Below, piece after piece: positions 10,451-61,573 of a stretch of 64,000 nt of DNA. A program made the position numbers and the translations under genes. Position 1 is the stretch's first letter, and every line of letters starts with the position of its first letter. The notes beneath the pieces were generated by a model. It did not search any database, had not been told where the DNA came from, and saw nothing but the letters and a program-made list of their open reading frames with translations. The stretch spans positions 62,001 through 126,000 of the IMG/VR virus record IMGVR_UViG_3300035181_000357; one strand, given 5' to 3'.

Positions 10451-13400
10451 TTAAGCCTTTGTGGTAACTTTGAGGGTTACGTTGATGTACAGTAGAGAGA
10501 AGACAGGCTTGAAGGCTACTGTGACATCTAGGACAGTAGGATCAGACTCGTTACGAGTAACTTGTAGACCCTTATAGGCTTCAATAATTTCTTGTTGAAC
10601 GAAGTTCTTCATGACAGAGTTCATCACGATCGTAACATCATTAACAAGAGCTCCGAGGTTCTTTCTTCCGATGAATTGATTGAGTTCCTTGCGGATCTTC
10701 TGTCTTACTTCATCAGAGATTGAGGTATTGGTTGGTTCCTGCGTGATAGGATTGCTCATATCAGTGGTTAGGTAGTGGCGAACAGTGAAGGCACCATTAT
10801 CCTCTATCAATACAGAGACTCCATCAGTTGCGATCTGATCCATGGTTGGATCGTCATATCTCTGGAGGAGACGCTCGAATCCGACCATCTTCTTACGAGT
10901 AAGAGTGGTAGCAGAATCGATTGCTGGATTGCCCTTCATACCTGCCATTGCAGCAGCTAGGAACTCACCACCAACAGCGTACTCAGAAGACTTACCATCA
11001 ACTTCTAGGCTGATGATTGCACCTGCTGGATATACAGCGACGACACGCTCTGACTTGATACTTTGAGCTCTTGATCTTGCATCTACTGGAGAAGTTCCAG
11101 TGCTGAAGCCTACAAAGCCCATAGCCTCTCCCTTATTACGAGGAGCAGCTTGTGTATTGAGGTGCTTGGCTAAGAATTGTTGAACACTCTTCTCAGTGTT
11201 TAAAGGCACAATAACAGAAGCCTTTGTGGTTCCACCAGTGATTGGACGAGCTAGAGAAGCAATACCATCGATGAAAGTCTGGTTAGATGCAATTGCTGAA
11301 CCAACTTGCTTCTTGAGCTGCATGCATCCGAGAGTGGTTGTACCATTCAGGACAGCAAGGCGAGCAGCGAGGGATAGCTTGTTTTCTACAGTAGGATTAC
11401 CATAAGCAGCATATACATCAGACAGGTTCGTGAAGATCTTTAACTCATAATCCTTATCGGTCTTTGCAGTCTTGAAGGATACATAGTAGAACTCACCAAC
11501 AGTTGGTTCTGCACCAGCCTTATTATAGGTGTTGATGAAGAGGTAATCATTTGCAGCCATTCCAAAGGTGGTCGATACCTTGGTACGGATACCAGGGATT
11601 GCAACAACTGGAACAGTAGAAGTGACATAGTGGACGCTCTTGCTTACGACGAATACTAGAGTGTCACCAGGAGCATAACGATAAGAGATTGGAGCGGTTA
11701 GACCATAGTCAGCAATGTTTGAGGCATTTGGATCCACGATCGTGACAGAGAATCCAGTGACAGAGTCGTTGTAAGTCTGACCGAGGTACCCGATACCAGC
11801 AGATCCACCAGTTACTAGGTTGGAAGATACAGTGTACTTGCTGCTGAATGCAGTATTTACATCAGGAGTACCACCAGCGAAGTTCAACTTAGCAGAAGTA
11901 GTAGCATTAGTAGAACCAGTACCAGTTAGTGTAGCAGTGATTAGTCCACCAGCAGTGGTTACTAGAGCACCAGCACCTAATGCAGCGTTTGCAGTGAAGA
12001 GGGCTACGATCTGGGTAAGGGTTCTTACAGTACCAGCACCATCAGTGATCTCTACAGAGACATCGTTACCAACGATAGTTAATGCAGCTGCATCTAATGT
12101 ATTTCCAGTGTTCTTGAACTGGATGGATACTGGAGTTACAGCAGAATCAAACTTATTGAATGTTCTGAAAGTGATACCAGTCTGAGCAGTAGTGTTAGTT
12201 GCCTGAGTTCCAGGAGTCTGAAGATAGCTCTCTCCAGTTGTAGCGAAGGTTAAGGTTACGACCTCTTCCTCGGCACCAGCAACAATCTTGGCATCAGAGA
12301 AAGTATTAGGCCACAGAATACCACCAGAGGAGGTGAAGACTGGGTCAGCTACAGTGTGAGTAGATTGATTGACAGTTGGGATCTGAAGATCGTTCTTATC
12401 CCAGATAGAGTAAGAACCCTGTCCGGTTACGCCAGGAACTTGTACCTTGACCTTGAACTTGTTATCAGCAAGACGAGACTTGAAGTATGTTACATAGACA
12501 CTTCCAGTTGCAGGAGGATTGAAGAGAGTTACTCTCTTATTTGCTCCATCAACTGAAGAGATGGTTACAGGAACTAGAGCAGCAGTTGGAGTAGCTCTGG
12601 TGTAGGCTTTTACATAAGCAGGATTATCGGTTACTCTTGATAGACCAGATCCAGTAGTAGGAGCATCCTTAAGAGTAAATACGTTGTTGATTCCATTCAC
12701 TGAACCAGTTGCTAACTCAAGGTAGACCTTATCATCCACGAGAGTGGCGATGATGTGAGAAGCATCGAAGGCGGTGAATCCACTAGATTGTAGACCAGCA
12801 GAAGCTGATACGGAAGCTCCCCACTGAATTTTATCACCCTCTAGGACATAGTCGATAGTGTTGATGAAGTCATCTCTATCAGGGGAGAATCCACACTTTA
12901 AGATCTCAGTAATATTTTCAGCAGGTAGGAAGTCGAAAGTATCCTGATAGGTGTTGGTGAAATAGGTAGTTAGTAAGGTCGAACCAAAAGCTACATCCCC
13001 ATTTAGAGTTATTAAACCATTTAAACCATCTACTGACGTAACACCAACGGCAGAACCGTTAACAGTTACTTTGACGTGAGCAGGGAGGTTGGTTACAACA
13101 CCACCGTTTGAACCATCTACGATAGGTAGGTTCTTGACCTTGAAGACCTTGCTAGTGCTCTGGCCTTCTCCACCAACGAATGGTGCAGAAGTAGCAGCGA
13201 CAGCAGCAGAACCACCACTAAGAGTGGCAGTTACCTGGATCAAACCACCAGAGGCAGTGATGATTCCAGTGTTGATTAAGGTAGCGAGTTCAGCGATAGT
13301 TCTATGAACAGGAACGGCAACGGTTCCCTTGACTAATTCGATTGAGATAACATCTGTACCCTGCCCACTGATGGCTAGAGTGTCAGATTTAGGAGCACCG

Positions 13401-13981
13401 AGGGTCTCAGTGAAAGCTACGGTAACATTATTCCCTGCGAAGCCTGGCTTCTCTAACTTGAGAGACAGGTTACCAGCCTGGGCTACTAGGGTTGCAAACT
13501 TAGGAATCTGGACGCTGAGATCTTCATCAGTTACTAAGTCATCACTTCTTTTGAAGAAGTAACTAGTTCTTAGATCAGAACCAGGGAGGAGAATAACATC
13601 GATTAGGAATTTTCCTGTGGCGCCATCTAAGGTCGAGACACTAATAGGATTCCCATCAACGGTTACAGAGATATCAGTTGGTGTGTTTGTAGTAGTTCCA
13701 CGACCATCCCCATTAACAATTGGGAAGTAGGCAACCTGGAATTCTCGCTTAACACCATCGACTTGGTCACTTAGATTTTCTAAGACCTTTCTGTCGTCTG
13801 ATGAAGAACTAGAACCTCTGTGGAGTTCCGCATTATTAGAGGTTTTAAATTCTTCTCCTTCTCCGAGAAGGACAGTGATACGAGCATCTCCGAAGAGTGA
13901 AGTACCAGCATCTTCGGTAGTAAGAGTAGTGTAGACACCGGGTTGGGCGTATTGATCAAAAAGAGCCATGCTTTTCTCCAT
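10451..13981 (-). CDS. Tail sheath protein with large repeated insertion domains
   Basis: N-terminal YAQPGVYT; C-terminal sheath signature (FLAAAMAG, FTVRHYLTT, FIGRKN, VTVAFKPVFSLLYINVT). Confidence 0.9.
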   Translation of the reverse strand: MEKSMALFDQYAQPGVYTTLTTEDAGTSLFGDARITVLLGEGEEFKTSNNAELHRGSSSSSDDRKVLENLSDQVDGVKREFQVAYFPIVNGDGRGTTTNTPTDISVTVDGNPISVSTLDGATGKFLIDVILLPGSDLRTSYFFKRSDDLVTDEDLSVQIPKFATLVAQAGNLSLKLEKPGFAGNNVTVAFTETLGAPKSDTLAISGQGTDVISIELVKGTVAVPVHRTIAELATLINTGIITASGGLIQVTATLSGGSAAVAATSAPFVGGEGQSTSKVFKVKNLPIVDGSNGGVVTNLPAHVKVTVNGSAVGVTSVDGLNGLITLNGDVAFGSTLLTTYFTNTYQDTFDFLPAENITEILKCGFSPDRDDFINTIDYVLEGDKIQWGASVSASAGLQSSGFTAFDASHIIATLVDDKVYLELATGSVNGINNVFTLKDAPTTGSGLSRVTDNPAYVKAYTRATPTAALVPVTISSVDGANKRVTLFNPPATGSVYVTYFKSRLADNKFKVKVQVPGVTGQGSYSIWDKNDLQIPTVNQSTHTVADPVFTSSGGILWPNTFSDAKIVAGAEEEVVTLTFATTGESYLQTPGTQATNTTAQTGITFRTFNKFDSAVTPVSIQFKNTGNTLDAAALTIVGNDVSVEITDGAGTVRTLTQIVALFTANAALGAGALVTTAGGLITATLTGTGSTNATTSAKLNFAGGTPDVNTAFSSKYTVSSNLVTGGSAGIGYLGQTYNDSVTGFSVTIVDPNASNIADYGLTAPISYRYAPGDTLVFVVSKSVHYVTSTVPVVAIPGIRTKVSTTFGMAANDYLFINTYNKAGAEPTVGEFYYVSFKTAKTDKDYELKIFTNLSDVYAAYGNPTVENKLSLAARLAVLNGTTTLGCMQLKKQVGSAIASNQTFIDGIASLARPITGGTTKASVIVPLNTEKSVQQFLAKHLNTQAAPRNKGEAMGFVGFSTGTSPVDARSRAQSIKSERVVAVYPAGAIISLEVDGKSSEYAVGGEFLAAAMAGMKGNPAIDSATTLTRKKMVGFERLLQRYDDPTMDQIATDGVSVLIEDNGAFTVRHYLTTDMSNPITQEPTNTSISDEVRQKIRKELNQFIGRKNLGALVNDVTIVMNSVMKNFVQQEIIEAYKGLQVTRNESDPTVLDVTVAFKPVFSLLYINVTLKVTTKA

Positions 13982-16448: not shown

Positions 16449-16721
16449 TTACACACTTGGGAGAACAACCGGAGTTTCTGTAGCCTCGATATCGAAGTCC
16501 TCGACGAAATTGAGTAATGTCTCTCTGATTTGACCATCTAGGATCAGAGGTTGAAGCTGCCCATACCTGTCAACAGGGGTGGAGTACATGTAACAATGGA
16601 GTGTTGTCCCTGTGTCAACGATATGAGAGATAGATGACATATTGATATAAACATTATTGCCATTCTTATCTTTACCTAAGTCAACCAGGTGGGGCATCAT
16701 CCCGATAAACGCATTAGCCAT
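16449..16721 (-). CDS. Hypothetical protein
   Basis: AGGAG RBS, 90 aa. Confidence 0.6.
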   Translation of the reverse strand: MANAFIGMMPHLVDLGKDKNGNNVYINMSSISHIVDTGTTLHCYMYSTPVDRYGQLQPLILDGQIRETLLNFVEDFDIEATETPVVLPSV

Positions 16722-16722
16722 T

Positions 16723-18927
16723 CTATCTCCTAGATTTTATCAATTTCGATTTTCTATTAAATTTCTGTTCATCTTTATTTATATGATTCTTAATCAGGGC
16801 CATGAAATCGCTAAATATCTCAGGATCTTGATATCTGTAGGACAGATAGCTGTTAAAGGCAGCTGAGTTATTAGATAGCTCTATATACTTAGATTTTTCT
16901 ATCAATTCTAGAATATCTTCATCTGTGTACCCAACATTTCTCAATTCAGATACGGCCTCACGAGCATAGGCATGCATCTCTTCCGGAAGTTCGAAGTAGT
17001 AACCCTCATTACGGGCCTCTAAGTATTCTTCATCCAAAAGAGTCTTACCTTCATCATGATCCTTCTGATGTTGAAGTTCATGAGATAGGTATTCCTCCAC
17101 CCCATCCTGGAACTGATTCCATCCTTCGAAAGTAGACAGTTTCCCTCTCTTAGTTGGATCTATATATAATATGACCCACCTGTTCTTTACCTGAATCTTT
17201 GCACTATCTAAGAATCCTTTATTTGGACCAGTATGTGCTTTCCTGACCTCTAACTTGGATATACCAACAACAGGCTTCATCCCTTGTAAAATTGCGTTAA
17301 GATCCTTCATAAACTCTATATTGGATTTCTTAGATGCTCTTACGATCTGATTCTTGACCTTGGCAAGGAAGATATGAATATCTTCTGCGAAAGAGGCTAT
17401 CTTTACCTTTGTGATACCTTTATCTCCACCAGCACTAAATTCAGCATCTTTTATCTTGAGATCCTTATCCTTAAACAAGTCTGGGAATTTCTTTATATAT
17501 TTATCAGCTAACCCTGGTTTTAGATATGCAATAGTTAGATGTGGACTATACTTTGGAAATTTGCTGACATTATCTGGATAAAGTTCTTTCAGTGTCTTTT
17601 CTGTATCTACTAGTTCCTTAGATTTCTCTATCTTTATAATCAGGACGTCCCTGCCATCATTTTCAAACTTATTCAGACCCTCTAAAGTTACTGTCTTTAA
17701 CCCAGATTCTTTAACTGCTTTTTCGAGGCGTCCATCATCTTCCTTTTCAAGAATGCCATACAAGAGAGTGATATGAGTCTGGTCTTCCACACCCTCTTCA
17801 TCCAAATCTTCTTTATCTATATTAGCTTTAATGAAATCTTGAATAGACTTAGTTATATCATCGTCTAATGTCAACTGTGTATTGGAATACTTATACTCTA
17901 CACCTTTCTTTGCTGTCTTAACACTTTTACCTGTCACTTCTCGAGCTCCATACTTTTCTTTAAAAGTCTTCAATTCATCTCGATCTATCGTAACAGCTAT
18001 CTCAGTCTCACCCATATCTCGTAACACAGCCCAACGATGACGACCATCTCCAAACATGATATTCTTACTAGGAGTCAATCCAAGATTAGGAGGATCAATA
18101 GGAGTTTCAGGGTAATCTACCAGCCACTGTTTAAATTTCTGATATCTAGTACCGATAGCAGCACCAGATCCATTCTCTCCTACATAGAAATTCTCATCTT
18201 TTGAATAAGAGGCTTCCACTTTCTTGACATCTACTATAACCCGGATCTCATCTCTGCGGGGGATTCTTGGTTGATATGTTTGAGAACTCATCTTAGTAAG
18301 GGCTTCAGATACCAGCTTCAGGAACTGTTTTTGTACTTTAGGAGATGCTTCATTAATGTAGTGATTCATCCCGTTATCAATTTTTGCAATCTCAGATCTA
18401 TTCAACATACTGTTGATATCTCTACCATCTCCCATAGCTTTATCACGAAGGATCTTTGCAACTTCATAAGCATGGGCAGCTATTTCCTGAGTGTCTTTAT
18501 AATAATCAGCTTCTGATCCTTTATCCTTTGGTGTTCTTGCGACAGTTTCTAGATCCAACCATGAGTATTTATATCTATCCACTAGGGGTTTATTAGCCAG
18601 CGCTACATTAGCCATCTGTCCAATATGTACAATCTCGTGATATATAGTCTTTCTAAGGTTTTCACCCTCTAACTCATCTTTTATCTCTATGATATATCTA
18701 AAGACTCTTTCTTTACCACCAGTTGCAAAAGCACGGGCAACACCTGCGTAGTCTATCCCTTTTATGAATTCTACTTTTGATCCTTTATCAACAACGTAGT
18801 CTTGCTCTGCCATCATTTCTTTCAGATTCTTATCTATAGAGTCTCTAATCATCTTTGGGTTTGAATAGTCACTAATAGTATTTATGACTCTGTTAGTAAA
18901 TTTATTAGTCCTGTCTGCTAGTCTCAT
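16723..18927 (-). CDS. Polyvalent protein: HExxH zincin, ParB/Srx-like, 2H phosphoesterase (Acb1/2'-5' RNA ligase-like), second HExxH zincin
   Basis: YHEIVH...EIAAHA; FGDGRHRWAVL; THITLLYG and SPHLTIAY; SHELQH...EMHAYA. Confidence 0.75.
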   Translation of the reverse strand: MRLADRTNKFTNRVINTISDYSNPKMIRDSIDKNLKEMMAEQDYVVDKGSKVEFIKGIDYAGVARAFATGGKERVFRYIIEIKDELEGENLRKTIYHEIVHIGQMANVALANKPLVDRYKYSWLDLETVARTPKDKGSEADYYKDTQEIAAHAYEVAKILRDKAMGDGRDINSMLNRSEIAKIDNGMNHYINEASPKVQKQFLKLVSEALTKMSSQTYQPRIPRRDEIRVIVDVKKVEASYSKDENFYVGENGSGAAIGTRYQKFKQWLVDYPETPIDPPNLGLTPSKNIMFGDGRHRWAVLRDMGETEIAVTIDRDELKTFKEKYGAREVTGKSVKTAKKGVEYKYSNTQLTLDDDITKSIQDFIKANIDKEDLDEEGVEDQTHITLLYGILEKEDDGRLEKAVKESGLKTVTLEGLNKFENDGRDVLIIKIEKSKELVDTEKTLKELYPDNVSKFPKYSPHLTIAYLKPGLADKYIKKFPDLFKDKDLKIKDAEFSAGGDKGITKVKIASFAEDIHIFLAKVKNQIVRASKKSNIEFMKDLNAILQGMKPVVGISKLEVRKAHTGPNKGFLDSAKIQVKNRWVILYIDPTKRGKLSTFEGWNQFQDGVEEYLSHELQHQKDHDEGKTLLDEEYLEARNEGYYFELPEEMHAYAREAVSELRNVGYTDEDILELIEKSKYIELSNNSAAFNSYLSYRYQDPEIFSDFMALIKNHINKDEQKFNRKSKLIKSRR

Positions 18928-18979
18928 TTATTCACCTAAATTAGATTTCAAAAATCTATTTATCACCAGACATCTAGTT

Positions 18980-21986: not shown

Positions 21987-22014
21987 TAAAAGGGTGGGGA
22001 CGATACCCCACCCT
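21987..22014 (-). terminator. Terminator after 822-aa fibre-like gene
   Basis: AGGGTGGGG-loop-CCCCACCCT then TTTT on minus strand. Confidence 0.85.
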
Positions 22015-22033
22015 CTATGATACTCGTTATTCT

Positions 22034-48075: not shown

Positions 48076-48137
48076 AAGTTAGGAACTGATACACTCAAGG
48101 TCAAGTAAATTCTTAATTCTACAAGAAGTTATCGATA

Positions 48138-48412
48138 TCCTGTATAGTAAGAACAACAAGGATGACCGTAACCTGTAACAACCTGTATTCTTAATAATTA
48201 TAATAGATAACTGATAATAAGTAACAATTATAACTTATAATGATGTTATTATGATTATTGTTATTAGGAATTAAGGACATGTTGTACACCTGTATCTAAT
48301 TGTTGTTGTAGCTGACAGGTTGTGTTCTCAATTTTGGACAATTTATACTTTCTGAATCATGTTTTTAAAGTCTCTCTATTACCAGGTACTTAAGAACACT
48401 TCATACACAGGT
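48138..48412. promoter_or_regulatory. Divergent control region and candidate replication origin
   Basis: Only strand switch in the window; about 80-nt AT-rich core 48187-48266; ACCTGT at 48171, 48181, 48288 and inverted ACAGGT at 48315, 48407. Confidence 0.55.
48246..48265. repeat. 20-nt exact copy of 46858-46877 (candidate target)
   Basis: Identical 20-mer, same orientation. Confidence 0.95.
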
Positions 48413-48458
48413 ATAAAATTAGGATTTAGAACTTGTCACCTTATTGAAGAGGTGACCT

Positions 48459-48929
48459 ATGTGGTTTGTATCGATCCTAAATTTCATGAAGCCAAAGATG
48501 CCTGAGTTCATTAAGAAAGCTTTCTTTGAAGATGATGGTAAGACTGTTTCGAGTTCCCGACTTATGGGAGGTCTGACCTTCGCTGTCCTACACTTCTGTA
48601 ACGTGACCTTGGTCGGAGCTATTTCGTGGGGGATCTGGTCGGTGATCAAGATTCATCCTATTGACAATATGGCTCTCACTTCTTTACTAGGTTCCATAAA
48701 GTACCTAGCTCTGTTATACCTAATCTTGGCTGCAACTGCTCTAGCCTTGTATGGTATCAACATCTGGAAGTATGTGTCTGCCATCAAGAATGGTTTGAAT
48801 AATGACGTCGATGGTTTAGAGGAAGAAGTGACTAAGACTTCTACCCAGGTTGAATCTACAAAGACTGTGACAACTCCTACCAAAGCTCCTGAAGTTCAGG
48901 TAGAGAAACCAACAAAAGACGATTTGTAG
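48459..48929 (+). CDS. Holin-like membrane protein
   Basis: SSSRLMG followed by two hydrophobic helices and a charged tail. Confidence 0.55.
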   Translation: MWFVSILNFMKPKMPEFIKKAFFEDDGKTVSSSRLMGGLTFAVLHFCNVTLVGAISWGIWSVIKIHPIDNMALTSLLGSIKYLALLYLILAATALALYGINIWKYVSAIKNGLNNDVDGLEEEVTKTSTQVESTKTVTTPTKAPEVQVEKPTKDDL

Positions 48930-48959
48930 ACCTATCAACCTTATTAATTAAGGTGACAG

Positions 48960-49424
48960 ATGGCTATTGCCAGAAAACGTGATGACAATCTTATCGAAAT
49001 CCTGATAGGGAAAGATCTATATGTTTTTAAATCTCTGTCTTGGTTGGATGAGATGGTTGTTAAAGAAGTTGATGGTATTTCCAGAGAACGTCAGTTGATG
49101 GCTAGAGCAACCATATCTGTCTCAAACAACCTGACCTTCACTTATGAAGAGAAACTGAAACTGATGAGAGCTATCCCACTCGCTATCTTTAAAAGAGTGT
49201 ATACTATCTATAAGGCTTTAGAGGCTGATGGTAGAAGACCATTTAAAACCATCCACTTATATATTGCACCAGAAGTCACTAAAGTCTTGGGAAAGATCAA
49301 GATGGAAGACGAGGATATGGAAGAGACTCTGAATGCTGTCTTTGGAGACGATGAGGCTGAGGTCCGAGAAACTGAGGAACTAATTCTTAAGAATTCTGGG
49401 TTGAAGGGAGCCACAAAAATCTAA
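48960..49424 (+). CDS. Probable tail assembly protein
   Basis: Upstream of tape measure; context only. Confidence 0.45.
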   Translation: MAIARKRDDNLIEILIGKDLYVFKSLSWLDEMVVKEVDGISRERQLMARATISVSNNLTFTYEEKLKLMRAIPLAIFKRVYTIYKALEADGRRPFKTIHLYIAPEVTKVLGKIKMEDEDMEETLNAVFGDDEAEVRETEELILKNSGLKGATKI

Positions 49425-50482
49425 TGGCTACTGCTGGTACTCAATTAATGGAGAAGATTAACAGTGGAGAGATTCAAACTGTTAAATCAGGTGTAACCAA
49501 GAAGATAAGACAAGATGTATCATCTGTCTTCGAAGAGATACTGGGAGTAGGAGCGAGAATTCGTCCTATCCTCTTAGATGGGTCTAGGATAGGGTGGATT
49601 CGTGGCCTTAGTGTTAACGAGAGAAAGTTGCTGGCCTCTTGGTTTAATGATCAGAATGAGTTAATAACTCAAGCTCTAGTATACTCTACATCGTTATCGA
49701 AAGAAGATATAGTTAATCTAAACTCATATGAATTTAGATCCTTGTTAAGACTAGCCAACATAATGAGCACAGCAGATGTCAGCCTGTACCCATACCTAGT
49801 TCCATATACTTCCACATCTAGTTCAGATGATTTGTGGCGAGCCTGTGGTTGTATAGTTCCTCAGTTCCTGAATAAAGATATAACTATGCCAGATAGTAAA
49901 ACTATACGAATACTGTGTAACTCTGATCATAGTAGATTCTGGGCAAGTCTATGCAGCAAAAGGGACCAAGCCTCTTCTGAATTATCCGGGAATTATGATG
50001 CAGCTATGGTAGCTGGTGCTATGGTGGGTAAGAGTGTTCAGAAGTATATAACTAATCTAAATAAGAGAGCCTTGTTGTTAGAGATAAATTCTGATAATCC
50101 ATGGAAGAACATCTCTACAATAGACCAGGCAGATTCCCTAGATCTGAATGATGGATGGGGCCACGCACATGAGGATTCGTCGGAAGCTGGCCTCTTAAGA
50201 GAAGGTGAAGGTATGGTTGGGTTTGATAAACACGAACAATTCATGGAAACATTCTACGATCAGTATATGAATAGGCAGCAAAAGAAGACTGAAATAACTA
50301 AAAGAACCGAACAAGGGTTAATAGATGAGGTATCATCTATTATGACTGAAAAAGAAGTACAAGCTAGAGAACGAGATGTAGATAAAGAAAGTTCTAGAAT
50401 AAGACAGATGGCAGTAGATGAAGCTTCTAGTGCCTCAGATCGTATGGAACAAAAAGATAACATGACTTTCATTGTAGACTAA
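49424..50482 (+). CDS. Probable tail assembly protein
   Basis: TAATG-coupled; context. Confidence 0.45.
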   Translation: MATAGTQLMEKINSGEIQTVKSGVTKKIRQDVSSVFEEILGVGARIRPILLDGSRIGWIRGLSVNERKLLASWFNDQNELITQALVYSTSLSKEDIVNLNSYEFRSLLRLANIMSTADVSLYPYLVPYTSTSSSDDLWRACGCIVPQFLNKDITMPDSKTIRILCNSDHSRFWASLCSKRDQASSELSGNYDAAMVAGAMVGKSVQKYITNLNKRALLLEINSDNPWKNISTIDQADSLDLNDGWGHAHEDSSEAGLLREGEGMVGFDKHEQFMETFYDQYMNRQQKKTEITKRTEQGLIDEVSSIMTEKEVQARERDVDKESSRIRQMAVDEASSASDRMEQKDNMTFIVD

Positions 50483-50492
50483 AGGAAATTAA

Positions 50493-51065
50493 ATGGAAAC
50501 TACACCACTAAGAACGTTAGACGATATAATCAATGATCTTCAAGGTTTTGGTATAGCCGAATCTGAGGACATAATCTCCTTAAATGTAAATAACAGAACT
50601 GTACAACTTAGAATTAAGAATCTCCCAACAGAGGAAGAGATCAATTCTCTTCTAGCTGCAGAAGAGTTTAAAGGGCATATGTGGGTCCAGAGAATCCGAG
50701 CTGAGATCCTGTCCAGATCCATATCTTGGATGAATGGAGTGGTGGTCACAGGAACTGAATACGTAGCACACCCTCTCCGTGATAAGATATCTGTAAACAT
50801 AAGAGTGGCTTTACGAGATGTTCTCTTAACTTGGGGTGTTGAGACTATCTCAATTCTCTGGAAGATCCTGATGGTCCATAACCAAAAGATCGAAGATAAT
50901 CTTATCGAATCATTCCCTGATACAGTCATAATGACTAATTTCGAGCAGAGATTCTTCCAACAGACTATGAAGGAATTGGAAGAAGCCCATAGAGGCGTAC
51001 TGGATGCTGTAGTGTCAGACACCTTAGTAGACACTATCGATGATCTCAAGAAGGGTGATCAATAA
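50493..51065 (+). CDS. Tail assembly chaperone-like protein
   Basis: Immediately before tape measure; LRIKNLPTEEE, EILSRSISWMNG. Confidence 0.5.
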   Translation: METTPLRTLDDIINDLQGFGIAESEDIISLNVNNRTVQLRIKNLPTEEEINSLLAAEEFKGHMWVQRIRAEILSRSISWMNGVVVTGTEYVAHPLRDKISVNIRVALRDVLLTWGVETISILWKILMVHNQKIEDNLIESFPDTVIMTNFEQRFFQQTMKELEEAHRGVLDAVVSDTLVDTIDDLKKGDQ

Positions 51066-51124
51066 ATAACAGGAACGAGATTCTATGCCTCTGTAATGCA
51101 GAGGCATATTAATAGAGGTTTAGA

Positions 51125-54370
<3,246 letters not shown>

Positions 54371-55987
54371 ATGGCCACAAAATCTGTAAAGACGAGCGAT
54401 CTAGATATTTATATAACAGAAGCCTGTAAGACAGGTGCTAAAGAAGTAACAGCTAAAGTCTTAAAAGCAACTCTGTCTGGTGAACAGAATTTATCTGGGA
54501 GTAATGTAGTATATAATCCTGCCTCCAACAGTTCTGGGGCCTGGGGCCTCGCCCAGATGAAGGATCAGGCACTATTATCCTGTGGTCCTAGAGTTCTAGG
54601 GTATGGTCCTAAAGAGAATCCACCAGAACAGACCTATATGGATGCTCTTCATAAAGCTGCAGCAGAACCAAAGACTGCTATAAAGTTAATGAAAGCATAT
54701 TTAGATGCTGAGATTCCTGGTATAAAAGGATCTTTAAAAGGTGTTAAGTATGATAGTAACGATATAGGAGCTATCGTAGCTGGATCATACAATCTCGGTG
54801 CCTCAGAGAATAAAAAGGCTATCCTAGCGTCTATAGCTAATGGTAGATTTAATAAAGATGCATATTACCAAAATTACTATAACACCCTAAATCCAGCTGA
54901 TAGAAGTCAATCGAATGTTAACAGAGTTAGAAAAGCTGGAGGAGATTTACCAACCAACGTCCCTTATACAGCTAAAGCTACTAATCTCATGGAGATAGAA
55001 AAGGGGAGAGCTGCAAATTATATAGCTAATGTAGATTTTCTATCAGATACTGTGTCTAATGGTGCATTATCAGAGATGCCTTCTTTAATAATCGAAGAGG
55101 GACTAGACAGTAAACCATGGTATGATGATAGAGAGTTGACAACAGGTAATAGAAACCTTAAACTAATATCAACACCAGCCTGGTTTGAGATAAATCTAAA
55201 ACAAGATATAAAAAGTAGTAATAGGTTAAAGTATAACAATGATGTAGTTAAGGTTAAGCTTAATGTAAGTTTATCAGAAGTACAGGTCTCTCTCGCTCAT
55301 GTTATAAACAATAGACACTCTAGAACTGGATTCCATGTAACATTATGGGGGCAGGAACCAGATACTATATCTGCTTCTGGATCAACGGGTGTCTTTATGA
55401 ATTTCTTTGGTCTCGCGAACTTGATGAGTGAGGAGGGAGTTATGAATAGGTCTGAATTAGAGGATGCTTTTTTATACGATTCAGACAATAACAAAAATCC
55501 AGCAAATAAAGCAAATAAAGGTGTGTACCAGAGAACAGTATCTCTAGAAAACCAACCTCTTAGGATAGCTGCTCAGGAGGCATTTATAGAGATGTTAAGC
55601 CTGTTTAAGAATAATGGAATCACAAGATTTCACCCTGAAATAGTGAATAGAATATATCCACAGAATAAGCAGGGAAATGGTGGTGTGGTTAGTGGGGAAG
55701 CCTCTAGAACATCTGCTAAAGAACCTATGAATCCCTGGTCAAAAGCAATAGGTATGTCTTTCACCCAAGCAACCAACAGATCCAATGATGTCATGACCAG
55801 GGGATACGTAGTATTTAAGTATAAGAACAAGACGTACCTTGGATACTTTAAAGATATAAATTTTGAAATGGATTCCAATAATCCGTTCCGTTGGAATTTC
55901 AATTTCACATTTCAGGTAGAGAGATCTCTGTCTACTACATTCTTTTTACCAAACCTCAGCAGCGGGTTTGATAGTAATTTTGGATAA
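54371..55987 (+). CDS. Lytic-transglycosylase-like N-domain fused to tube-initiator/hub-like C-domain
   Basis: SGEQN, GAWGLAQM, AGSYNLG; C-terminal TYLGYF...PFRWNFNFTF. Confidence 0.65.
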   Translation: MATKSVKTSDLDIYITEACKTGAKEVTAKVLKATLSGEQNLSGSNVVYNPASNSSGAWGLAQMKDQALLSCGPRVLGYGPKENPPEQTYMDALHKAAAEPKTAIKLMKAYLDAEIPGIKGSLKGVKYDSNDIGAIVAGSYNLGASENKKAILASIANGRFNKDAYYQNYYNTLNPADRSQSNVNRVRKAGGDLPTNVPYTAKATNLMEIEKGRAANYIANVDFLSDTVSNGALSEMPSLIIEEGLDSKPWYDDRELTTGNRNLKLISTPAWFEINLKQDIKSSNRLKYNNDVVKVKLNVSLSEVQVSLAHVINNRHSRTGFHVTLWGQEPDTISASGSTGVFMNFFGLANLMSEEGVMNRSELEDAFLYDSDNNKNPANKANKGVYQRTVSLENQPLRIAAQEAFIEMLSLFKNNGITRFHPEIVNRIYPQNKQGNGGVVSGEASRTSAKEPMNPWSKAIGMSFTQATNRSNDVMTRGYVVFKYKNKTYLGYFKDINFEMDSNNPFRWNFNFTFQVERSLSTTFFLPNLSSGFDSNFG

Positions 55988-55990
55988 CTT

Positions 55991-57001
55991 ATGTTAAGCC
56001 ATGATCAAGATACCAGAAATATCATAAATTCTATGGATTCGTTGGAGAATATAAACATTCTACCAACTAGAGGAGAGAATAAAATTCTCCCACTAGCCAT
56101 AGATAAATCTGTATTTCCAACTACAATCTCAGGAGCAGCAGGAATACCTCCAGACTTTAATTTTAGAGATTCTTTAGATGAGTTAGACTTCGCCTCTTCT
56201 AAAGCAAGAATAACCCTTACAGATTATATAACCATAAAGGTTAATAATAGAAAAGCAGCAAACGGGGATCCTTTCGTCTTTAGATTTTTAATAAATCCTG
56301 AATCTCTAAATATAAACAGGTCATCAGTGGATGGGCAAACCATGACTCGAGCTGGGTGGCAATTTGGTGTCTGGGGAGAGGACTTCATAAAGATTAGTGG
56401 TAAAGGAACGACAGCTGGGCAATACTTTGCTAGAACCCTAACTGATGGATATGGGGAATACACCTTGTCTTATAGAAATCTCCTGGCGTTCATGACTCTG
56501 TTTGAGAACAATGGGTATTGGTTTGAGGGAGAAAGTCCTTTCGATAATGGTCCTCTTGCCTCTGATCTCCTGAGAAGGAGAATAAAGAAGCATTCTGATG
56601 TAGTGTTCTCAGTTGGAAATTTCATATGGAATGGGATGTTTCAAAGTTTAACTGTCTCAGATACTGCAGATACACCATATTTCAATACTTTCAGTTTCAA
56701 TTTTATAGCCTGGAAAGAGCGATATAGAGGTAGTAGTCCTTGGTTAGACAGTACAGAATCAAATCTATATCGGGGACACGCATACGAAGCAGGATATAAG
56801 AATAAGAGTATATCTGAGTCTGGTGGTAGTCAGCAAGGGAATGTATTAAACAATGCCGTAGATTCTACACCAAGTTCACTATCATCTAGTAGTAACCAAA
56901 CATCTTATGGATTATCTGGAACAGATCAAAAGATAACTCTGGGGCAACTTCAAACACCACCCCTTTTAGATATCACAAGACAACTTAATGGTGGGAAATG
57001 A
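55991..57001 (+). CDS. Tube-initiator/baseplate centre protein
   Basis: FLINPESL, WGEDFIKISGKGTT, WNGMFQSLTV...PYFNTFSFNF; paralogous to the preceding C-domain. Confidence 0.6.
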   Translation: MLSHDQDTRNIINSMDSLENINILPTRGENKILPLAIDKSVFPTTISGAAGIPPDFNFRDSLDELDFASSKARITLTDYITIKVNNRKAANGDPFVFRFLINPESLNINRSSVDGQTMTRAGWQFGVWGEDFIKISGKGTTAGQYFARTLTDGYGEYTLSYRNLLAFMTLFENNGYWFEGESPFDNGPLASDLLRRRIKKHSDVVFSVGNFIWNGMFQSLTVSDTADTPYFNTFSFNFIAWKERYRGSSPWLDSTESNLYRGHAYEAGYKNKSISESGGSQQGNVLNNAVDSTPSSLSSSSNQTSYGLSGTDQKITLGQLQTPPLLDITRQLNGGK

Positions 57002-59322
57002 CTAATATAAGAAATATATCACAAACCCATATGGAACGGGATATTGTTAAGACAGCTCCAGATATGGTTGTATATATAGATGATTATCCTTTTATAGAAA
57101 ATCCATATATAGGGGACTCTGGTACATCTGTAAACTTCAATGACTTCATAACTACAATCACAGGCCATTGTGATTGTGATTCCCTTATTCCAACAGCCAG
57201 TATTGTTCTATCAGTTCCTAATCATTTTAATTATCTGTTTCTAGCTCCTGGTGGAAACAAGATTCTGGCTACAATGTCAATAATCAAAATATTCTCGAAA
57301 GGATATTATTTTGATGATGATGGGAATACAGTGTATCACAGAGTATTCTATGGCTTAATAGATTCTGTTGGATATTCATACACTGGAACTACTCTACAAA
57401 TAACGATAGGATGTAAGGGTATAATGCGTTTGTTTGAACTTATTCAGACAAATGTGGCCCCAGGTGCAGCAAACTTCGCCGTATTAGCTGGTAAATCATA
57501 TTTAGTACCATTCAGAACTAAAGATTATGATAAATCTGCCTTAGCAATCATATATAAGAGTATATTTAGAGATCTAAATGCAGATGAGATTGCAGGAGCA
57601 CTTCCTGATGTTACTCTCCAGAGGAGTATATCAACAAACGCTTTGGATACTAGAATGACCAATAGTACACTCGTTTCTATGGTGAAGAATAGATACATCT
57701 TAAGATGGGCCCCTGTGATGTCTGAGATAAAAGCTGCCACCAGAATATTTGGTTGGGATTATGAGCTTGAGAAGAGGGATAAGAAGACAAAGGAATTATC
57801 TAATCTTCCAGATGCAAAAGAAATGGCTGAAGCATCTTTTATTCATCAAACCGATTCAGTGTCTAAATACCTACCAGATTATGCGATTGGAAATATCACG
57901 CTTCTACAATCTAAAATTGTAACAAAATTAGAGAGAATATCATCAATGTCTGGTGTGATTGGGTATGAAGCATATCAAGATCTAAATGGTAATATCATAT
58001 TTAAGCCACCTCTCTATAATCTAGATGTTACTAACACTACAGCAATAGATGAATCTAAGAATCCTTTCATTATAAATCTTGATGAGATCATAGATGAGAG
58101 TGAACAAGAAGATGAACAAGCTATCCGAGCCACGAGAGTAACTGTGAAGGGGCAACCTTGGGGTGCTCTCCTCCAAGAGAGTTATAATCAGAGTATATTA
58201 CCTGGTGTGTCGTCATACACCGATATGAATCTGTTTGCTAAATTTGGTATGAGAGAAGAACCAATCAAAGAGATATCCTGGCTAAAGGAAGACAACAGAG
58301 TCAACTATGCCTATGCCATCTCTGAAATGTTTAGAATGAATAGAGCATATAGAACCTACAGATTCTCTATTCCTATGAGACCTGAAATGAAGGTTGGGTT
58401 CCCTTGTTATATCAAACATCATGATATGTATGGGTACACAAGAAACATATCCTGGAGTTACACGGTTGGTGGAACAGCAACAATGAGCGTAACCTTGGAC
58501 TCTCTAAGAAGAAGAGTGTTGGTTCCAATAGAGGTTAAGAATTCTGATGGTACAACTGTAACTGAGTATAAGAGCATTCCAAATCTAGTATCTAAGTTCT
58601 CAAAGAAAGCTAAGAAGCCTAAAGAAAATGTATCCCCAACTGAAGCTGCGGTAGATGAGCGTGGGAAGGTCCTAGCTTATGGTACTGGTAAAGATTCTAA
58701 GAAAGTACCAGATTCTCAGGCAGAGATCGTGATAGATGATAGGAATCATAATGATTATGAGGATCTTATCGTAGTACAGACAAGAGTCCCAGATAGCGGA
58801 GAGTCCTGGCTTATTGGTGAGGATGAAGATAATTTCTTCGTACACGAGAGAAAATGTGATACTACATATCTCAAGGCTTTGAGTGACAAACAACCATTCA
58901 CTGATAATAATGGGTATGAATTATATGGGCCCTTCCCATGGGGACGTTGGGTTACACTAGAATCTGCAATAGGAATATTTACTCTATCGTTGACAGAGCA
59001 GAAGAATAACAATACTGAATCCTGGATCGTATCAGATGCTGTTAGTTTGAGTATGATACTTCTAGGTTCCTTCAATCCAGATATTGCAAATCTAAAAGGT
59101 GAAATAGCTAAGAAGACAGAAGAAGATATAAAGAAGTTATCAGGGTATAACGTAACTAAATTCACTATCAATGCTTCTAAATATGATTCGCAGGACAATA
59201 AAGATGGTCCTAAGTCACTAAATCCTGATGGTCCATCTTTCATCCCTAAAACCGAAAATAGAGATGTATATAAAGAACCATTGAATACCATTAAAAACAC
59301 ATTTATATGGCCTAAACTATGA
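56998..59322 (+). CDS. Baseplate hub protein
   Basis: YEAYQDLNGNIIFKPPLY, IPMRPEMKVGFP; position. Confidence 0.65.
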   Translation: MTNIRNISQTHMERDIVKTAPDMVVYIDDYPFIENPYIGDSGTSVNFNDFITTITGHCDCDSLIPTASIVLSVPNHFNYLFLAPGGNKILATMSIIKIFSKGYYFDDDGNTVYHRVFYGLIDSVGYSYTGTTLQITIGCKGIMRLFELIQTNVAPGAANFAVLAGKSYLVPFRTKDYDKSALAIIYKSIFRDLNADEIAGALPDVTLQRSISTNALDTRMTNSTLVSMVKNRYILRWAPVMSEIKAATRIFGWDYELEKRDKKTKELSNLPDAKEMAEASFIHQTDSVSKYLPDYAIGNITLLQSKIVTKLERISSMSGVIGYEAYQDLNGNIIFKPPLYNLDVTNTTAIDESKNPFIINLDEIIDESEQEDEQAIRATRVTVKGQPWGALLQESYNQSILPGVSSYTDMNLFAKFGMREEPIKEISWLKEDNRVNYAYAISEMFRMNRAYRTYRFSIPMRPEMKVGFPCYIKHHDMYGYTRNISWSYTVGGTATMSVTLDSLRRRVLVPIEVKNSDGTTVTEYKSIPNLVSKFSKKAKKPKENVSPTEAAVDERGKVLAYGTGKDSKKVPDSQAEIVIDDRNHNDYEDLIVVQTRVPDSGESWLIGEDEDNFFVHERKCDTTYLKALSDKQPFTDNNGYELYGPFPWGRWVTLESAIGIFTLSLTEQKNNNTESWIVSDAVSLSMILLGSFNPDIANLKGEIAKKTEEDIKKLSGYNVTKFTINASKYDSQDNKDGPKSLNPDGPSFIPKTENRDVYKEPLNTIKNTFIWPKL

Positions 59323-61571
59323 AATTCATAAATCTATCACAACGATTATCCCCCTTAGAACACACTGTAGAAGATGTTCGTTATGGTATATTTATAGGTC
59401 AAGTCGAGTTCGTAGATTATGAAAAACAGATTCTAGCTGTGCGAGATATCACTACTGGAATCTTGTATGAGAGAGTAGAAGTTCAACCTGCTTCATCCAG
59501 TTCTACAGACCATACAGATACTACTATTCCTTTAGAGGGTTCTAAATGTATCTGTTGTAATATATCTGCTACCAATGGATTTATTAAGGTTGCTGTAATA
59601 CAGTGGCTCCTAACAGCTACAAAATTAGGGTTAAATGGAATCTCATATAGAGATTCTAACAATCCTAAGGGATATAATCTCAGAAGACGTTATATCTATA
59701 GAAAGGGATACCCAGGACAACATGTAGTCAGTTTATCTGGTGGATATGCCGAATTAGAAGACTTGGGCTGGGACAGACAAGGTGAAGACCTGTCTAGAGA
59801 CCATTTAGACACATTCAGAAGAGTCAGAACCCAGACAGCAGGAACGCATTTTCAGGTAGATGAATCCGGTCTACAGATAAGTGGAGAGATTCTAAGACCA
59901 GGTTCAGACATACCTACCAAAGTTCTACCAGATGGGACATTAATTCAGTCTCTACATCTTAAAACTGGGGACAGATTCGCTGATGGTTCAGCAATGAATA
60001 TCCCTGTGGTAGAGAGACTGGAGAGGACACAGGAGTATGGTCTAGGTTATCCAGTCCCACAGGAGGTTCTAGATTCAGCAGAGTTCTTAGGAGTCCTCGG
60101 GATCAATGAAGCACCATTCGCTAAGACATCTGTAGCTAACAACCTTGATGACCAGAGTTATGTGAATAACCAGGCAGTAGATGCTCCATATGACAACGAT
60201 GAGAAACCTCTCAGACCATTTGAAAAAGATGGCGTTTCGTATAGACGAAAAGGGTTCATTGTAGAATCTGTTAAAGGAACGTTAGTAGGATATAACGCTT
60301 TCGATAAATCTACATATGGCCAAATCCTAAAACCTACGTTATTCCCACACACCCAAGCTGGTAGATTCTCAACATCTCTTGAATCTGGGTATCTACCTGT
60401 CAACAAGTCAGCCGATGAAGTAGAGTCTGTCTTAGCATCTAGTGCATTTAGTCTAAGATTCCCATACGAGTACAATACAACCAGATTCGATATCACAAAA
60501 GAGGGTATGGTCCAATTCGAAATAGGATCCACACTTCCTAAAGAGAATATCCCAATTGATTCCTCTACATATGAACACCCTCACGGTGCAGGTCGTTCTA
60601 TGGAGGGGCACTTCCTAGGTTCGGTTAAACTCGTCGTAGGAAAGAACAGAGATGAAGAAGAGTCGCTCGACATCGCGACACTAGGACAAGTAGTACTCCG
60701 CCTAGGTTCTGATGACACTAGTCTCCCACAAACACGTAGAGATGTGCATACCCAGATTAGATCAAAGATGGATTCTATTCTAGGCCGTGACCTACAATTC
60801 TGGAAGAAGCCAAAGAACGACAAGACAGGAGATGCTGGAAGCCTGGAAAATAAATCTGCGTTTGAAAAAGTTAGTCTCCGTGGTGCATTTGATGGTGGTA
60901 CTATTCTTCGTCTAGGTGCTAGAGATCCTGGAGCATTAAGAAAGCATCTCCGAAATGGTTATACTGACGCTAAGGGTGTTACAGAGTCTCCAAACGACGA
61001 GAATAGAAAAGATTCTAGAACTGATGGTCGTGTAACCTATGGATCAGGAGATAGCCTTTATGCTTTCCATGATCTGACACAGGCAGGTAAATCTAAGTAT
61101 AGTAAATCTCCATACTTCTGGTCGGATTCTCCAATAACTAATATGGACCGTCATGGTCTGTCCTTGGATGTTCATGCTGTAAGAGATATCTTACTCCGTA
61201 TTGGGAAGAATCCAGACTCTGGTCAATCCCTTGCTATCGATCTTGGTGGTGGTATGGTAGCATACCTCGGTAAAGATAAGCAAAGTAGATCGATCACAGC
61301 ATCATTAGATGGTGGTGCTGAGATAACCATCAAAGCAAACACAGATGGCCATGCTCTTCAACTAGAGATAGATGGCAATGTAAATATCTATTGTAAAGGC
61401 CATTGGCATCAGGTAGTTACAGGTGACTATTATGTAGAATCCAACAACTCAACTGCTATAACTAATATAGAACACATCGTTAAAGCTACTAATATCAGAG
61501 AATCTGCTGGTGTACAACATGTCACAGAAGCGATAGATATAGTAAATAATCAGGGATTATATAAGAGTTAA
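59319..61571 (+). CDS. Baseplate spike-like protein
   Basis: N-terminal OB-like IGQVEFVDYE...IPLEGS; C-terminal beta-helix-like repeats (IDGNVNI..KGHWHQVVTGDY). Confidence 0.55.
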   Translation: MKFINLSQRLSPLEHTVEDVRYGIFIGQVEFVDYEKQILAVRDITTGILYERVEVQPASSSSTDHTDTTIPLEGSKCICCNISATNGFIKVAVIQWLLTATKLGLNGISYRDSNNPKGYNLRRRYIYRKGYPGQHVVSLSGGYAELEDLGWDRQGEDLSRDHLDTFRRVRTQTAGTHFQVDESGLQISGEILRPGSDIPTKVLPDGTLIQSLHLKTGDRFADGSAMNIPVVERLERTQEYGLGYPVPQEVLDSAEFLGVLGINEAPFAKTSVANNLDDQSYVNNQAVDAPYDNDEKPLRPFEKDGVSYRRKGFIVESVKGTLVGYNAFDKSTYGQILKPTLFPHTQAGRFSTSLESGYLPVNKSADEVESVLASSAFSLRFPYEYNTTRFDITKEGMVQFEIGSTLPKENIPIDSSTYEHPHGAGRSMEGHFLGSVKLVVGKNRDEEESLDIATLGQVVLRLGSDDTSLPQTRRDVHTQIRSKMDSILGRDLQFWKKPKNDKTGDAGSLENKSAFEKVSLRGAFDGGTILRLGARDPGALRKHLRNGYTDAKGVTESPNDENRKDSRTDGRVTYGSGDSLYAFHDLTQAGKSKYSKSPYFWSDSPITNMDRHGLSLDVHAVRDILLRIGKNPDSGQSLAIDLGGGMVAYLGKDKQSRSITASLDGGAEITIKANTDGHALQLEIDGNVNIYCKGHWHQVVTGDYYVESNNSTAITNIEHIVKATNIRESAGVQHVTEAIDIVNNQGLYKS

Positions 61572-61573
61572 AT

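Follow-up and report, generated by a model that had tools for sequence, protein, structure and literature searches.

A probable polyvalent protein of zincin-like, ParB/Srx-fold, and 2H phosphoesterase modules at the head of a jumbo myovirus tail module

Four modules in one open reading frame

We analyzed a window of 64,000 nucleotides from the IMG/VR virus record IMGVR_UViG_3300035181_000357 (positions 62,001 to 126,000 of that record), focusing on one minus-strand open reading frame (ORF) that encodes a protein of 734 amino acids (aa), referred to here as P0001. An earlier reading of the same DNA (the original prediction) had placed at 16723-18927 a late-expressed polyvalent protein with four domains in one chain, and had proposed that it is a packaged and injected anti-defense payload. 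The coordinates proved exact for a minus-strand ATG-to-stop ORF, and the four-domain architecture was confirmed: the chain runs from a zincin-like module through an Osa-like ParB/Srx domain and a 2H phosphoesterase to a second zincin-like module, giving three fold types. We regard this architecture as nearly certain. The features of the ORF are listed below.

16723..18927, minus strand: polyvalent-protein ORF (P0001), ATG to stop, 734 aa, 84 kDa, stop codon included
18932..18937, minus strand: Shine-Dalgarno sequence AGGTGA of this ORF, 4 nt 5' of the ATG at 18927
18283..18927, minus strand: module 1, N-terminal zincin-like metallopeptidase (Nz), residues 1-215, from alignment A1; paralogue of module 4
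18625..18639, minus strand: HExxH motif of module 1, H97 E98 I V H101, with a putative third ligand, E148, downstream
17914..18282, minus strand: module 2, Osa/PFIN-like ParB/Srx-fold domain, residues 216-338
18034..18048, minus strand: ParB/Srx active-site arginine motif D294-G-R-H-R298; G, R, H, and R invariant in 53 sequences
17392..17913, minus strand: module 3, 2H phosphoesterase (LigT/Acb1-like), residues 339-512, from PF13563, PDB profile, and hhalign matches
17767..17775, minus strand: first HxT motif, H385 I T387; H invariant and T nearly so in 86 homologs; aligned with T4 Acb1 H44/T46
17533..17541, minus strand: second HxT motif, H463 L T465; H and T invariant in 86 homologs; aligned with T4 Acb1 H113/T115
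16726..17391, minus strand: module 4, second zincin-like module (Cz), residues 513-734, from an AlphaFold2 (AF2) model and homology to P0003 and P0008; basic tail at its end
17068..17082, minus strand: HExxH motif of module 4, H616 E617 L Q H620, with a putative third ligand, E650, at 16978-16980

The ORF is a real gene under selection, since it is intact and near-identical, without indels, in four metagenome runs from sediments or microbial mats (one of which may be the record's own source), and since the 12 single-nucleotide polymorphisms across these metagenomes comprise six synonymous and six conservative changes. It was read without an alternative genetic code, and none was needed. A 522-aa entry (P0002) suggested an internal start at M213; because no Shine-Dalgarno sequence precedes this ATG and P0002 lies on a 5.5-kb contig, we consider that start a gene-calling artifact. 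No second copy of any P0001 module was found within the 210-kb record. At the nucleotide level, megablast against phage genomes gave zero matches for the gene, and phmmer of the whole protein against PDB sequences returned nothing relevant. We modeled two of the modules with AF2, namely ParB (from alignment A4) and the C-terminal zincin (from alignment A1). The whole-protein and two-domain alignments A2 and A3 were discarded, as MAFFT had set zincin and first-half 2H fragments under the ParB region.

Both HExxH motifs expected of the two predicted zincins were found (HEIVH, residues 97-101, and HELQH, residues 616-620), each followed by a conserved Glu about 30-45 residues on. Across modules 1 and 4 and seven homologous segments (alignment A1), the H-E-x-x-H residues, a Tyr, and the downstream Glu are invariant, and the two P0001 modules align with each other, making them paralogues. 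Module 1 is also 48% identical to the N terminus of P0003, a related protein described below. The AF2 model of module 4 (predicted local distance difference test [pLDDT] 87; predicted template-modeling score 0.78) contains, by DSSP, helix 24-42, strands 46-51, 61-67, and 72-77, helix 88-113 (HExxH at 104-108), and helix 136-152 (Glu at 138). This succession of a helix, three strands, an HExxH helix, and a Glu helix is the zincin core described previously (PMC5512222).

Structure comparisons of the zincin-like modules point in the same direction. With few exceptions, the solved structures that match the sheet plus HExxH helix of the module 4 model are zincins (selecase, abylysin, TTHA0227, HtpX, IrrE/PprI, ArdC, CapP, SPRTN, BepA, and aminopeptidase N), none of them at significance; the Foldseek match to selecase, for example, has an E value of 0.2 and a probability of 0.75. 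In BFVD, the zincin module draws IrrE-, SprT-, and M48-type matches at E about 0.1, and module 4 matches stand-alone phage proteins of 200-240 aa (E 1.6e-4). Modules 1 and 4 fall into the same viral/ESM clusters of free phage proteins of ~225 aa (template-modeling score 0.7), beyond which the neighbors are SprT-like, Peptidase_M78, M48, DA1, and YgjP proteins; in the ESM Atlas, module 1 reached the same ~225-aa viral clusters as module 4 and then Peptidase_M78, SprT, and DA1.

Sequence searches added little to this. A Pfam scan of both zincin-like modules gave no family model at significance, and a word-indexed search with the zincin alignment, which covers only proteins of 0.55-1.75 times the query length, gave zero matches; stand-alone relatives surfaced solely through structure and embedding comparisons. 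By hhalign, the zincin module aligned with the SprT-like region of the cultured phage Tunturi_5 (see below) over 18 columns only, with a probability of 13.6%. A link to Pfam LPD1 was considered and rejected: weak matches follow both HExxH motifs in P0001 and are absent from the homologous segments of P0003, P0008, P0010, P0011, P0020, and P0057. Altogether, motifs and topology make the zincin identity of modules 1 and 4 likely, short of proof.

For module 2, the ParB-like assignment of the original prediction is supported by a ParB/Srx fold and a conserved arginine motif. The AlphaFold model is confident (pLDDT 93.5), and the alignment of 53 homologs shows a [D/N]-G-R-H-R motif within an invariant G-R-H-R..D.G pattern. 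At the sequence level, the family profile reaches SbnI with an E value of 0.02, and the motif aligns with D-G-V-H-R of SbnI. Searches of residues 215-345 with Pfam ParBc, PFIN, and ddrB-ParB gave nothing at E values up to 5, and two relatives, P0053 and P0013, matched PFIN under its cut-off (E 6e-4 and 5e-3). In structure, module 2 resembles Osa, the fertility-inhibition factor of IncW plasmids (PDB 4o7k/4ovb; Pfam PFIN, PF22162), although sequence identity to Osa is only 11%, P0001 falls below the PFIN model, and the setting is a phage rather than a plasmid. ATPase and DNase activities have been reported for Osa (cited in PMC5512222), whose known target is a type IV coupling protein (PMC5696584). 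Osa-like ParB/Srx domains (e.g., P0007, P0022, P0031, and P0053) are abundant both as free proteins of ~115-210 aa and inside giant proteins.

Module 3 contains the two HxT motifs named in the original prediction (HITL, residues 385-388, and HLTI, residues 463-466), and the range given there for the 2H domain, about 17400-17890, fits the boundaries found here (17392-17913). Pfam PF13563 (2_5_RNA_ligase2) matches with 38.9 bits over the whole protein and 42.8 bits over the cut-out domain (cut-off 27), as does PHROG 755, which is named "RNA ligase." Searched against the PDB, a profile of the 86-member 2H family found as its best match 9q2g, "Anti-CBASS protein Acb1" (E 4.2e-9), CBASS being cyclic-oligonucleotide-based antiphage signaling systems; 9q2y (E 8e-7) and the T4-type Acb1 7t26 (E 3.7e-6) were also recovered. 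Structures 9Q2G and 9Q2Y are of 2H PDE-9, which cleaves 3'3'-cyclic GMP-AMP (cGAMP), groups structurally with T4 Acb1, and has an N-terminal lid (Doherty et al. 2025, bioRxiv 10.1101/2025.08.21.671373). By hhalign, the family aligns with T4 Acb1 (gene 57B) over 78 columns (probability 91.8%, E 7e-7) with both HxT motifs in register, and the MAFFT alignment A6 agrees on the HxT/HxT tetrad (T4 H44/T46/H113/T115). The Pfam Acb1 model matches 75 of the 86 family members at E<0.001, and the relatives P0012, P0075, and P0062 exceed its cut-off (30.6, 39.9, and 39.7 bits). These comparisons indicate that module 3 is, as judged from sequence, a catalytically intact 2H enzyme of the Acb1/LigT-like clade. 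P0001 thus shares the 2H core and tetrad with Acb1 and 2H PDE-9, but carries them in a multi-domain chain, whereas Acb1 is a free protein of ~150 aa.

In phage T4, the neighbors of gene 57B, i.e., acb1 (L006:1953-2411), are virion-related: ipI, 57A, gene 1, and gene 3 (tail terminator). This loosely parallels the position of the gene described here. Gene 57B is still labeled "RNA ligase" in the RefSeq record.

The LigT side of the clade raises the possibility that module 3 is directed at RNA, either as a repair enzyme with 2',3'-cyclic phosphodiesterase activity for tRNA or mRNA severed by host anticodon nucleases or HEPN RNases, or as a Usb1-like RNase. The best Pfam family is LigT-type and the PHROG carries an RNA ligase name, the archaeal LigT-like structures 2fyh and 1vdx match the 2H profile nearly as well as the Acb1 structures do (E 1.7e-7 and 3.1e-7), and RNase action is the first alternative considered by Iyer et al. 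(PMC5512222). On the other hand, the top solved match of the family is a cGAMP-cleaving enzyme, no RNA ligase or polynucleotide kinase was noticed beside the gene, and 2H domains of the polyvalent type never associate with RNA ligases according to the same authors. We therefore consider an RNA-directed role unlikely.

Database relatives and the polyvalent-protein class

An exhaustive search recovered 3718 relatives of P0001 at E ≤ 0.001, nearly all of them via the ParB or the 2H module; the module counts that follow refer to the best 150 of these 3718. The ParB module is present in 52 of them, the 2H module in 110, and both in 13, in either order. Many are large: 41 of the 110 2H-bearing and 27 of the 52 ParB-bearing relatives have at least 600 aa, reaching up to 3995 aa. 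Short stand-alone forms account for 47 of the 110 and 16 of the 52, respectively. Other domains found in 27 large relatives include ART-PolyVal (five), GNAT (four), InPase, Phage_portal, Portal_Mu, and ddrB-ParB (two each), as well as LPD38, LPD1, NUDIX, and tail lysozyme (once each). P0010 and P0011 combine the same zincin family with 2H and Osa-like ParB modules in other orders. In addition, close relatives of the P0001 2H module are covalently fused to portal proteins, as seen in the following architectures.

P0075: Portal_Mu + LPD1 + 2H
P0127: Portal_Mu + ART-PolyVal + 2H
P0145: Phage_portal + 2H

The original prediction had described zincin, ParB, and 2H domains as common in phage polyvalent conflict proteins, and this agrees with the module list of Iyer et al. 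2017. In that survey, zincin metallopeptidases (MPTases) form a hub of polyvalent proteins, sometimes in several copies interspersed with other domains, and ~8% of the MPTase-bearing polyvalent proteins carry more than one; ParB-superfamily and 2H domains are phage-specific polyvalent modules, polyvalent genes adjoin late genes, and fusions of 2H to MuF or portal proteins are noted (PMC5512222). P0001 fits the class, as its modules recur in giant ART-PolyVal, GNAT, InPase, and portal proteins, and a protein with such domains (gp321, see below) occupies the same slot in a related phage. Because of its four modules, the recurrent modules it shares with these relatives, the variation at its slot, and its position beside tail genes, it is very probable that P0001 is a phage-type polyvalent protein sensu Iyer et al. 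2017.

Within this class, proteins such as P1 DdrB likewise combine several unrelated enzyme modules, have zincins in between, and have virion-gene neighbors. P0001 differs from DdrB in that its ParB module is Osa/PFIN-like by structure and has no detectable similarity to the DdrB ParB (by hhalign, alignment A4 gave a probability of 0.3%, a comparison of low power because the template was a single sequence). Its zincin family likewise has no match to the DdrB peptidase and no Pfam model, and at 734 aa it is small for a polyvalent protein. The particulars of P0001 are therefore an Osa-like rather than DdrB-like ParB/Srx domain, a zincin family that occurs twice in the chain and lacks a Pfam model, its small size, and an exchangeable slot.

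An exchangeable slot before the tail genes

The gene is the first of a conserved tail/head module in a jumbo myovirus of roughly 300 kb, a genome size that follows from the 210,611-bp source record being judged 69% complete. The structural gene block of the original prediction holds on both sides. Downstream, on the same strand, are two short genes (90 and 116 aa), then genes for a 516-aa protein homologous to the "tail terminator" of Tunturi_5, for a Zn-ribbon protein, and for the tail sheath (1176 aa); beyond the sheath, still on the same strand, are a tube protein, a virion protein, a head maturation protease, and the major head protein. On the upstream side lie two small genes, together with a match to a PHROG "virion structural protein" and a weak one to a tail fiber. 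The neighboring features and the related loci are as follows.

16449..16721, minus strand: next gene, 90 aa, first of the conserved tail run; 63-76% identical in L002, L003, and L004
14067-14492, minus strand: 141-aa protein with an N-terminal Zn-ribbon (PF09723, E 4.5e-9)
10451-13981, minus strand: tail sheath, 1176 aa; only the last ~350 residues match known sheath families
21989..22016, minus strand: strong terminator-like hairpin, 11-bp stem with 7 GC pairs and a T-rich tail, from a consensus scan only
L002:10001-12607, L003:6654-9260, and L004:1310-2518: related contigs with different slot modules
P0003: 868 aa; N-zincin, 2H, insert, C-zincin, and a weak methyltransferase-like end; no ParB
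P0008: 402 aa; C-zincin and a methyltransferase-like end only
L005:3901-7989: gp321 of Tunturiibacter phage Tunturi_5 (PP885688), 1362 aa, annotated "MutT/NUDIX hydrolase"

The contigs of the closest relatives keep the downstream genes at 55-79% identity, and the slot protein differs in each. Directly after P0003 and P0008 comes the same conserved gene run as after P0001 (90 aa, 116 aa, 516 aa, Zn-ribbon, and sheath), and the C-terminal zincin is the only module kept at the slot in all three closest relatives. In P0003 and P0008, the linker before the extra domain corresponds to the basic tail at the end of P0001.

The closest cultured relative is Tunturi_5, a 308.7-kb phage of Acidobacteriota, with 43% identity to the present phage in the sheath and 66% in the major head protein. 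Its gp321 is flanked by the head-tail connector and the tail terminator, in a slot syntenic with that of P0001. Pfam finds in gp321 a SprT-like zincin, a 2H domain, three ART-PolyVal stretches, GNAT, and DUF3990, and no NUDIX match at E ≤ 0.05; the annotation "MutT/NUDIX hydrolase" therefore looks incomplete, and the domain content is that of a polyvalent protein. Both gp321 and P0001 start with an HExxH module (SprT-like in gp321), carry a 2H module, and precede the tail terminator and sheath. However, gp321 is 1362 aa long, adds the three ART-PolyVal stretches, GNAT, and DUF3990, and has neither an Osa-like ParB nor a second zincin; only the 2H regions of the two proteins align (28% identity).

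The position of the gene could also mean that P0001 serves mainly in morphogenesis or as a structural part of the head-tail junction, with the C-terminal HExxH module as an assembly protease or non-catalytic part and ParB and 2H as dispensable passengers. The C-terminal module is the only one kept at the slot across P0001, P0003, and P0008, the gene immediately precedes the tail-terminator block, and weak BFVD matches in Serratia phage BF and Cellulophaga phage phi4:1 are annotated "structural protein." Yet the catalytic residues are intact and conserved in all four P0001 modules, the slot protein of Tunturi_5 shares detectably only the 2H module, and the zincin-like module also occurs as free phage proteins of ~225 aa. 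We consider a mainly structural role very unlikely.

The polyvalent gene is translationally coupled to the next gene of the tail module: the 90-aa gene starts 1 nt past the stop codon of the polyvalent ORF, whose 3' end contains the AGGAGA ribosome-binding site of that gene. In the consensus scan, no terminator-like site was found between the hairpin at 21989-22016 and the tail genes, and the polyvalent gene therefore probably shares a transcript with them. The hairpin itself lies between genes for an 822-aa and a 108-aa protein and may mark the start of the polyvalent gene's transcription unit. Replication helicases lie from about 16 kb upstream on the same strand as the polyvalent gene; because replication genes share its strand, orientation alone cannot separate early from late expression. 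We infer late expression, as named in the original prediction, from two things only, the position of the gene and its translational coupling to tail genes.

Some further features of the window were observed. The C-terminal ~350 residues of the sheath match PHROG 2839, with phage G and mycobacteriophages, and its first ~820 residues are common only to Tunturi_5 and one uncultured 485-kb phage. The 141-aa Zn-ribbon protein, encoded between the tail-terminator homolog and the sheath, is kept in L002, L003, L004, and Tunturi_5. Gene orientation and GC skew flip near 48 kb (about 48100-48460), and a plus-strand block of large ORFs (1081, 538, 336, 774, 750, and >809 aa) occupies 48459-64000.

Proposed function and delivery

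We mildly favor, as a whole, a reading in which P0001 is a polyvalent chain of independent conflict enzymes that is delivered by the virion and acts against signaling. P0001 would be synthesized alongside virion proteins, packed in the particle, and set free in the cell together with the DNA. The chain would be cut into separate enzymes, or helped into the virion, by one zincin module or by both; for the C-terminal zincin, a role in loading or processing is attractive because this module is what stays constant at the slot. The 2H module would hydrolyze nucleotide messengers of host immunity (CBASS-type cyclic di- and trinucleotides, possibly others) by a metal-independent HxT/HxT mechanism, and the ParB/Srx module may attack host or rival DNA as a nucleoside triphosphate (NTP)-dependent nuclease or nickase, or act on it as an NTPase.

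Packaging, injection, and degradation of CBASS signals are steps that we infer from analogy and from the portal fusions of related 2H domains. Among polyvalent proteins, packaged precedents are P1 DdrB and DarA, T4 Alt, and the N4 virion RNA polymerase, and in the latter the MPTase-containing region is needed for encapsidation (PMC5512222). By such analogies, we place virion delivery of P0001 slightly on the probable side. Action of the 2H module on immune nucleotide signals is possible, and we put it just short of evenly balanced; the substrate range of viral 2H enzymes differs by structural group (Doherty et al. 2025, bioRxiv 10.1101/2025.08.21.671373).

Instead of being virion cargo, P0001 might be a cytoplasmic multi-enzyme made during infection, which would silence abortive-infection signaling in the producing cell during particle assembly, as the stand-alone Acb1 does. 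This would suit the short stand-alone forms among the best 150 relatives (47 of 110 with 2H, 16 of 52 with ParB), and T4 acb1 (57B), which sits beside structural genes (ipI, 57A, and gene 3), is not reported as packaged (PMC9117128). Against it, the portal fusions place the clade of closely related 2H domains physically in virions, the syntenic Tunturi_5 protein bears Alt-like ART-PolyVal domains, and the polyvalent gene is tightly coupled to tail genes. On balance, a purely cytoplasmic role appears rather unlikely.

Several results, besides that report on T4 Acb1 and the nearly equal LigT-like matches to the 2H profile, weigh against virion-delivered anti-signaling by P0001. No significant match of its zincin-like modules to a solved zincin was found, their assignment being one of motifs and topology. 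With the Pfam Acb1 model (PF23474), P0001 reaches 16.2 bits over its full length and 19.8 bits when only the domain is taken, below the cut-off of 27. T4 Acb1 uses Y12, W74, F107, and W147 for base stacking, E141 to read adenine, and a C-terminal lid at residues 145-152 (Hobbs et al. 2022, PMC9117128); in alignment A6, in which the domain ends align poorly, P0001 has a Phe at the positions of W74 and F107 and no counterpart of Y12, E141, or the lid residue W147. A lid at the N terminus is also possible in such enzymes, as 2H PDE-9 shows. Whole structural groups of viral 2H enzymes were inactive on every messenger tested (Doherty et al. 2025, bioRxiv 10.1101/2025.08.21.671373). With regard to timing, all genes from about 48 kb to position 1 lie on one strand, replication genes included, and the phage was not found in any RNA run.

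Thus, the "Acb1-like" label of the original prediction stands in part. Remote homology of the 2H module to Acb1 is supported by the match to 9q2g (E 4e-9) and the hhalign probability with T4 Acb1 (91.8%); in contrast, the Pfam Acb1 cut-off is not reached and the lid residues have no counterpart in alignment A6. At the sequence level, "Acb1-like" is therefore apt for P0001 in the sense of remote homology only, as the protein is not a demonstrable member of Pfam Acb1.

Taking the favored, virion-delivered reading one step further, we tentatively propose that this slot, where the tail operon begins, may serve as a cassette for interchangeable cargo in this jumbo-phage group, with the constant zincin loading and later releasing the enzymes fused to it. 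An Acb1/PDE-9-type phosphodiesterase and an Osa-like nuclease would then enter with the DNA and could blunt CBASS-type signaling from the very onset of infection, before phage genes are expressed. We hold this extended proposal as a minority possibility.

Virion-delivered anti-signaling was predicted by Iyer et al. 2017, and we found no experiment that demonstrates it. Two families that are widespread in phages and had no significant Pfam match in our scans emerge from this analysis, the Osa-like ParB/Srx domain (~125 aa as a free protein) and the HExxH...E module of ~220 aa. The locus offers a compact four-module test case, together with a natural comparison series of four related phages with different slot modules. 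Known anti-CBASS nucleases act after their expression in the infected cell; a virion-delivered one, if true, would precede host signaling.

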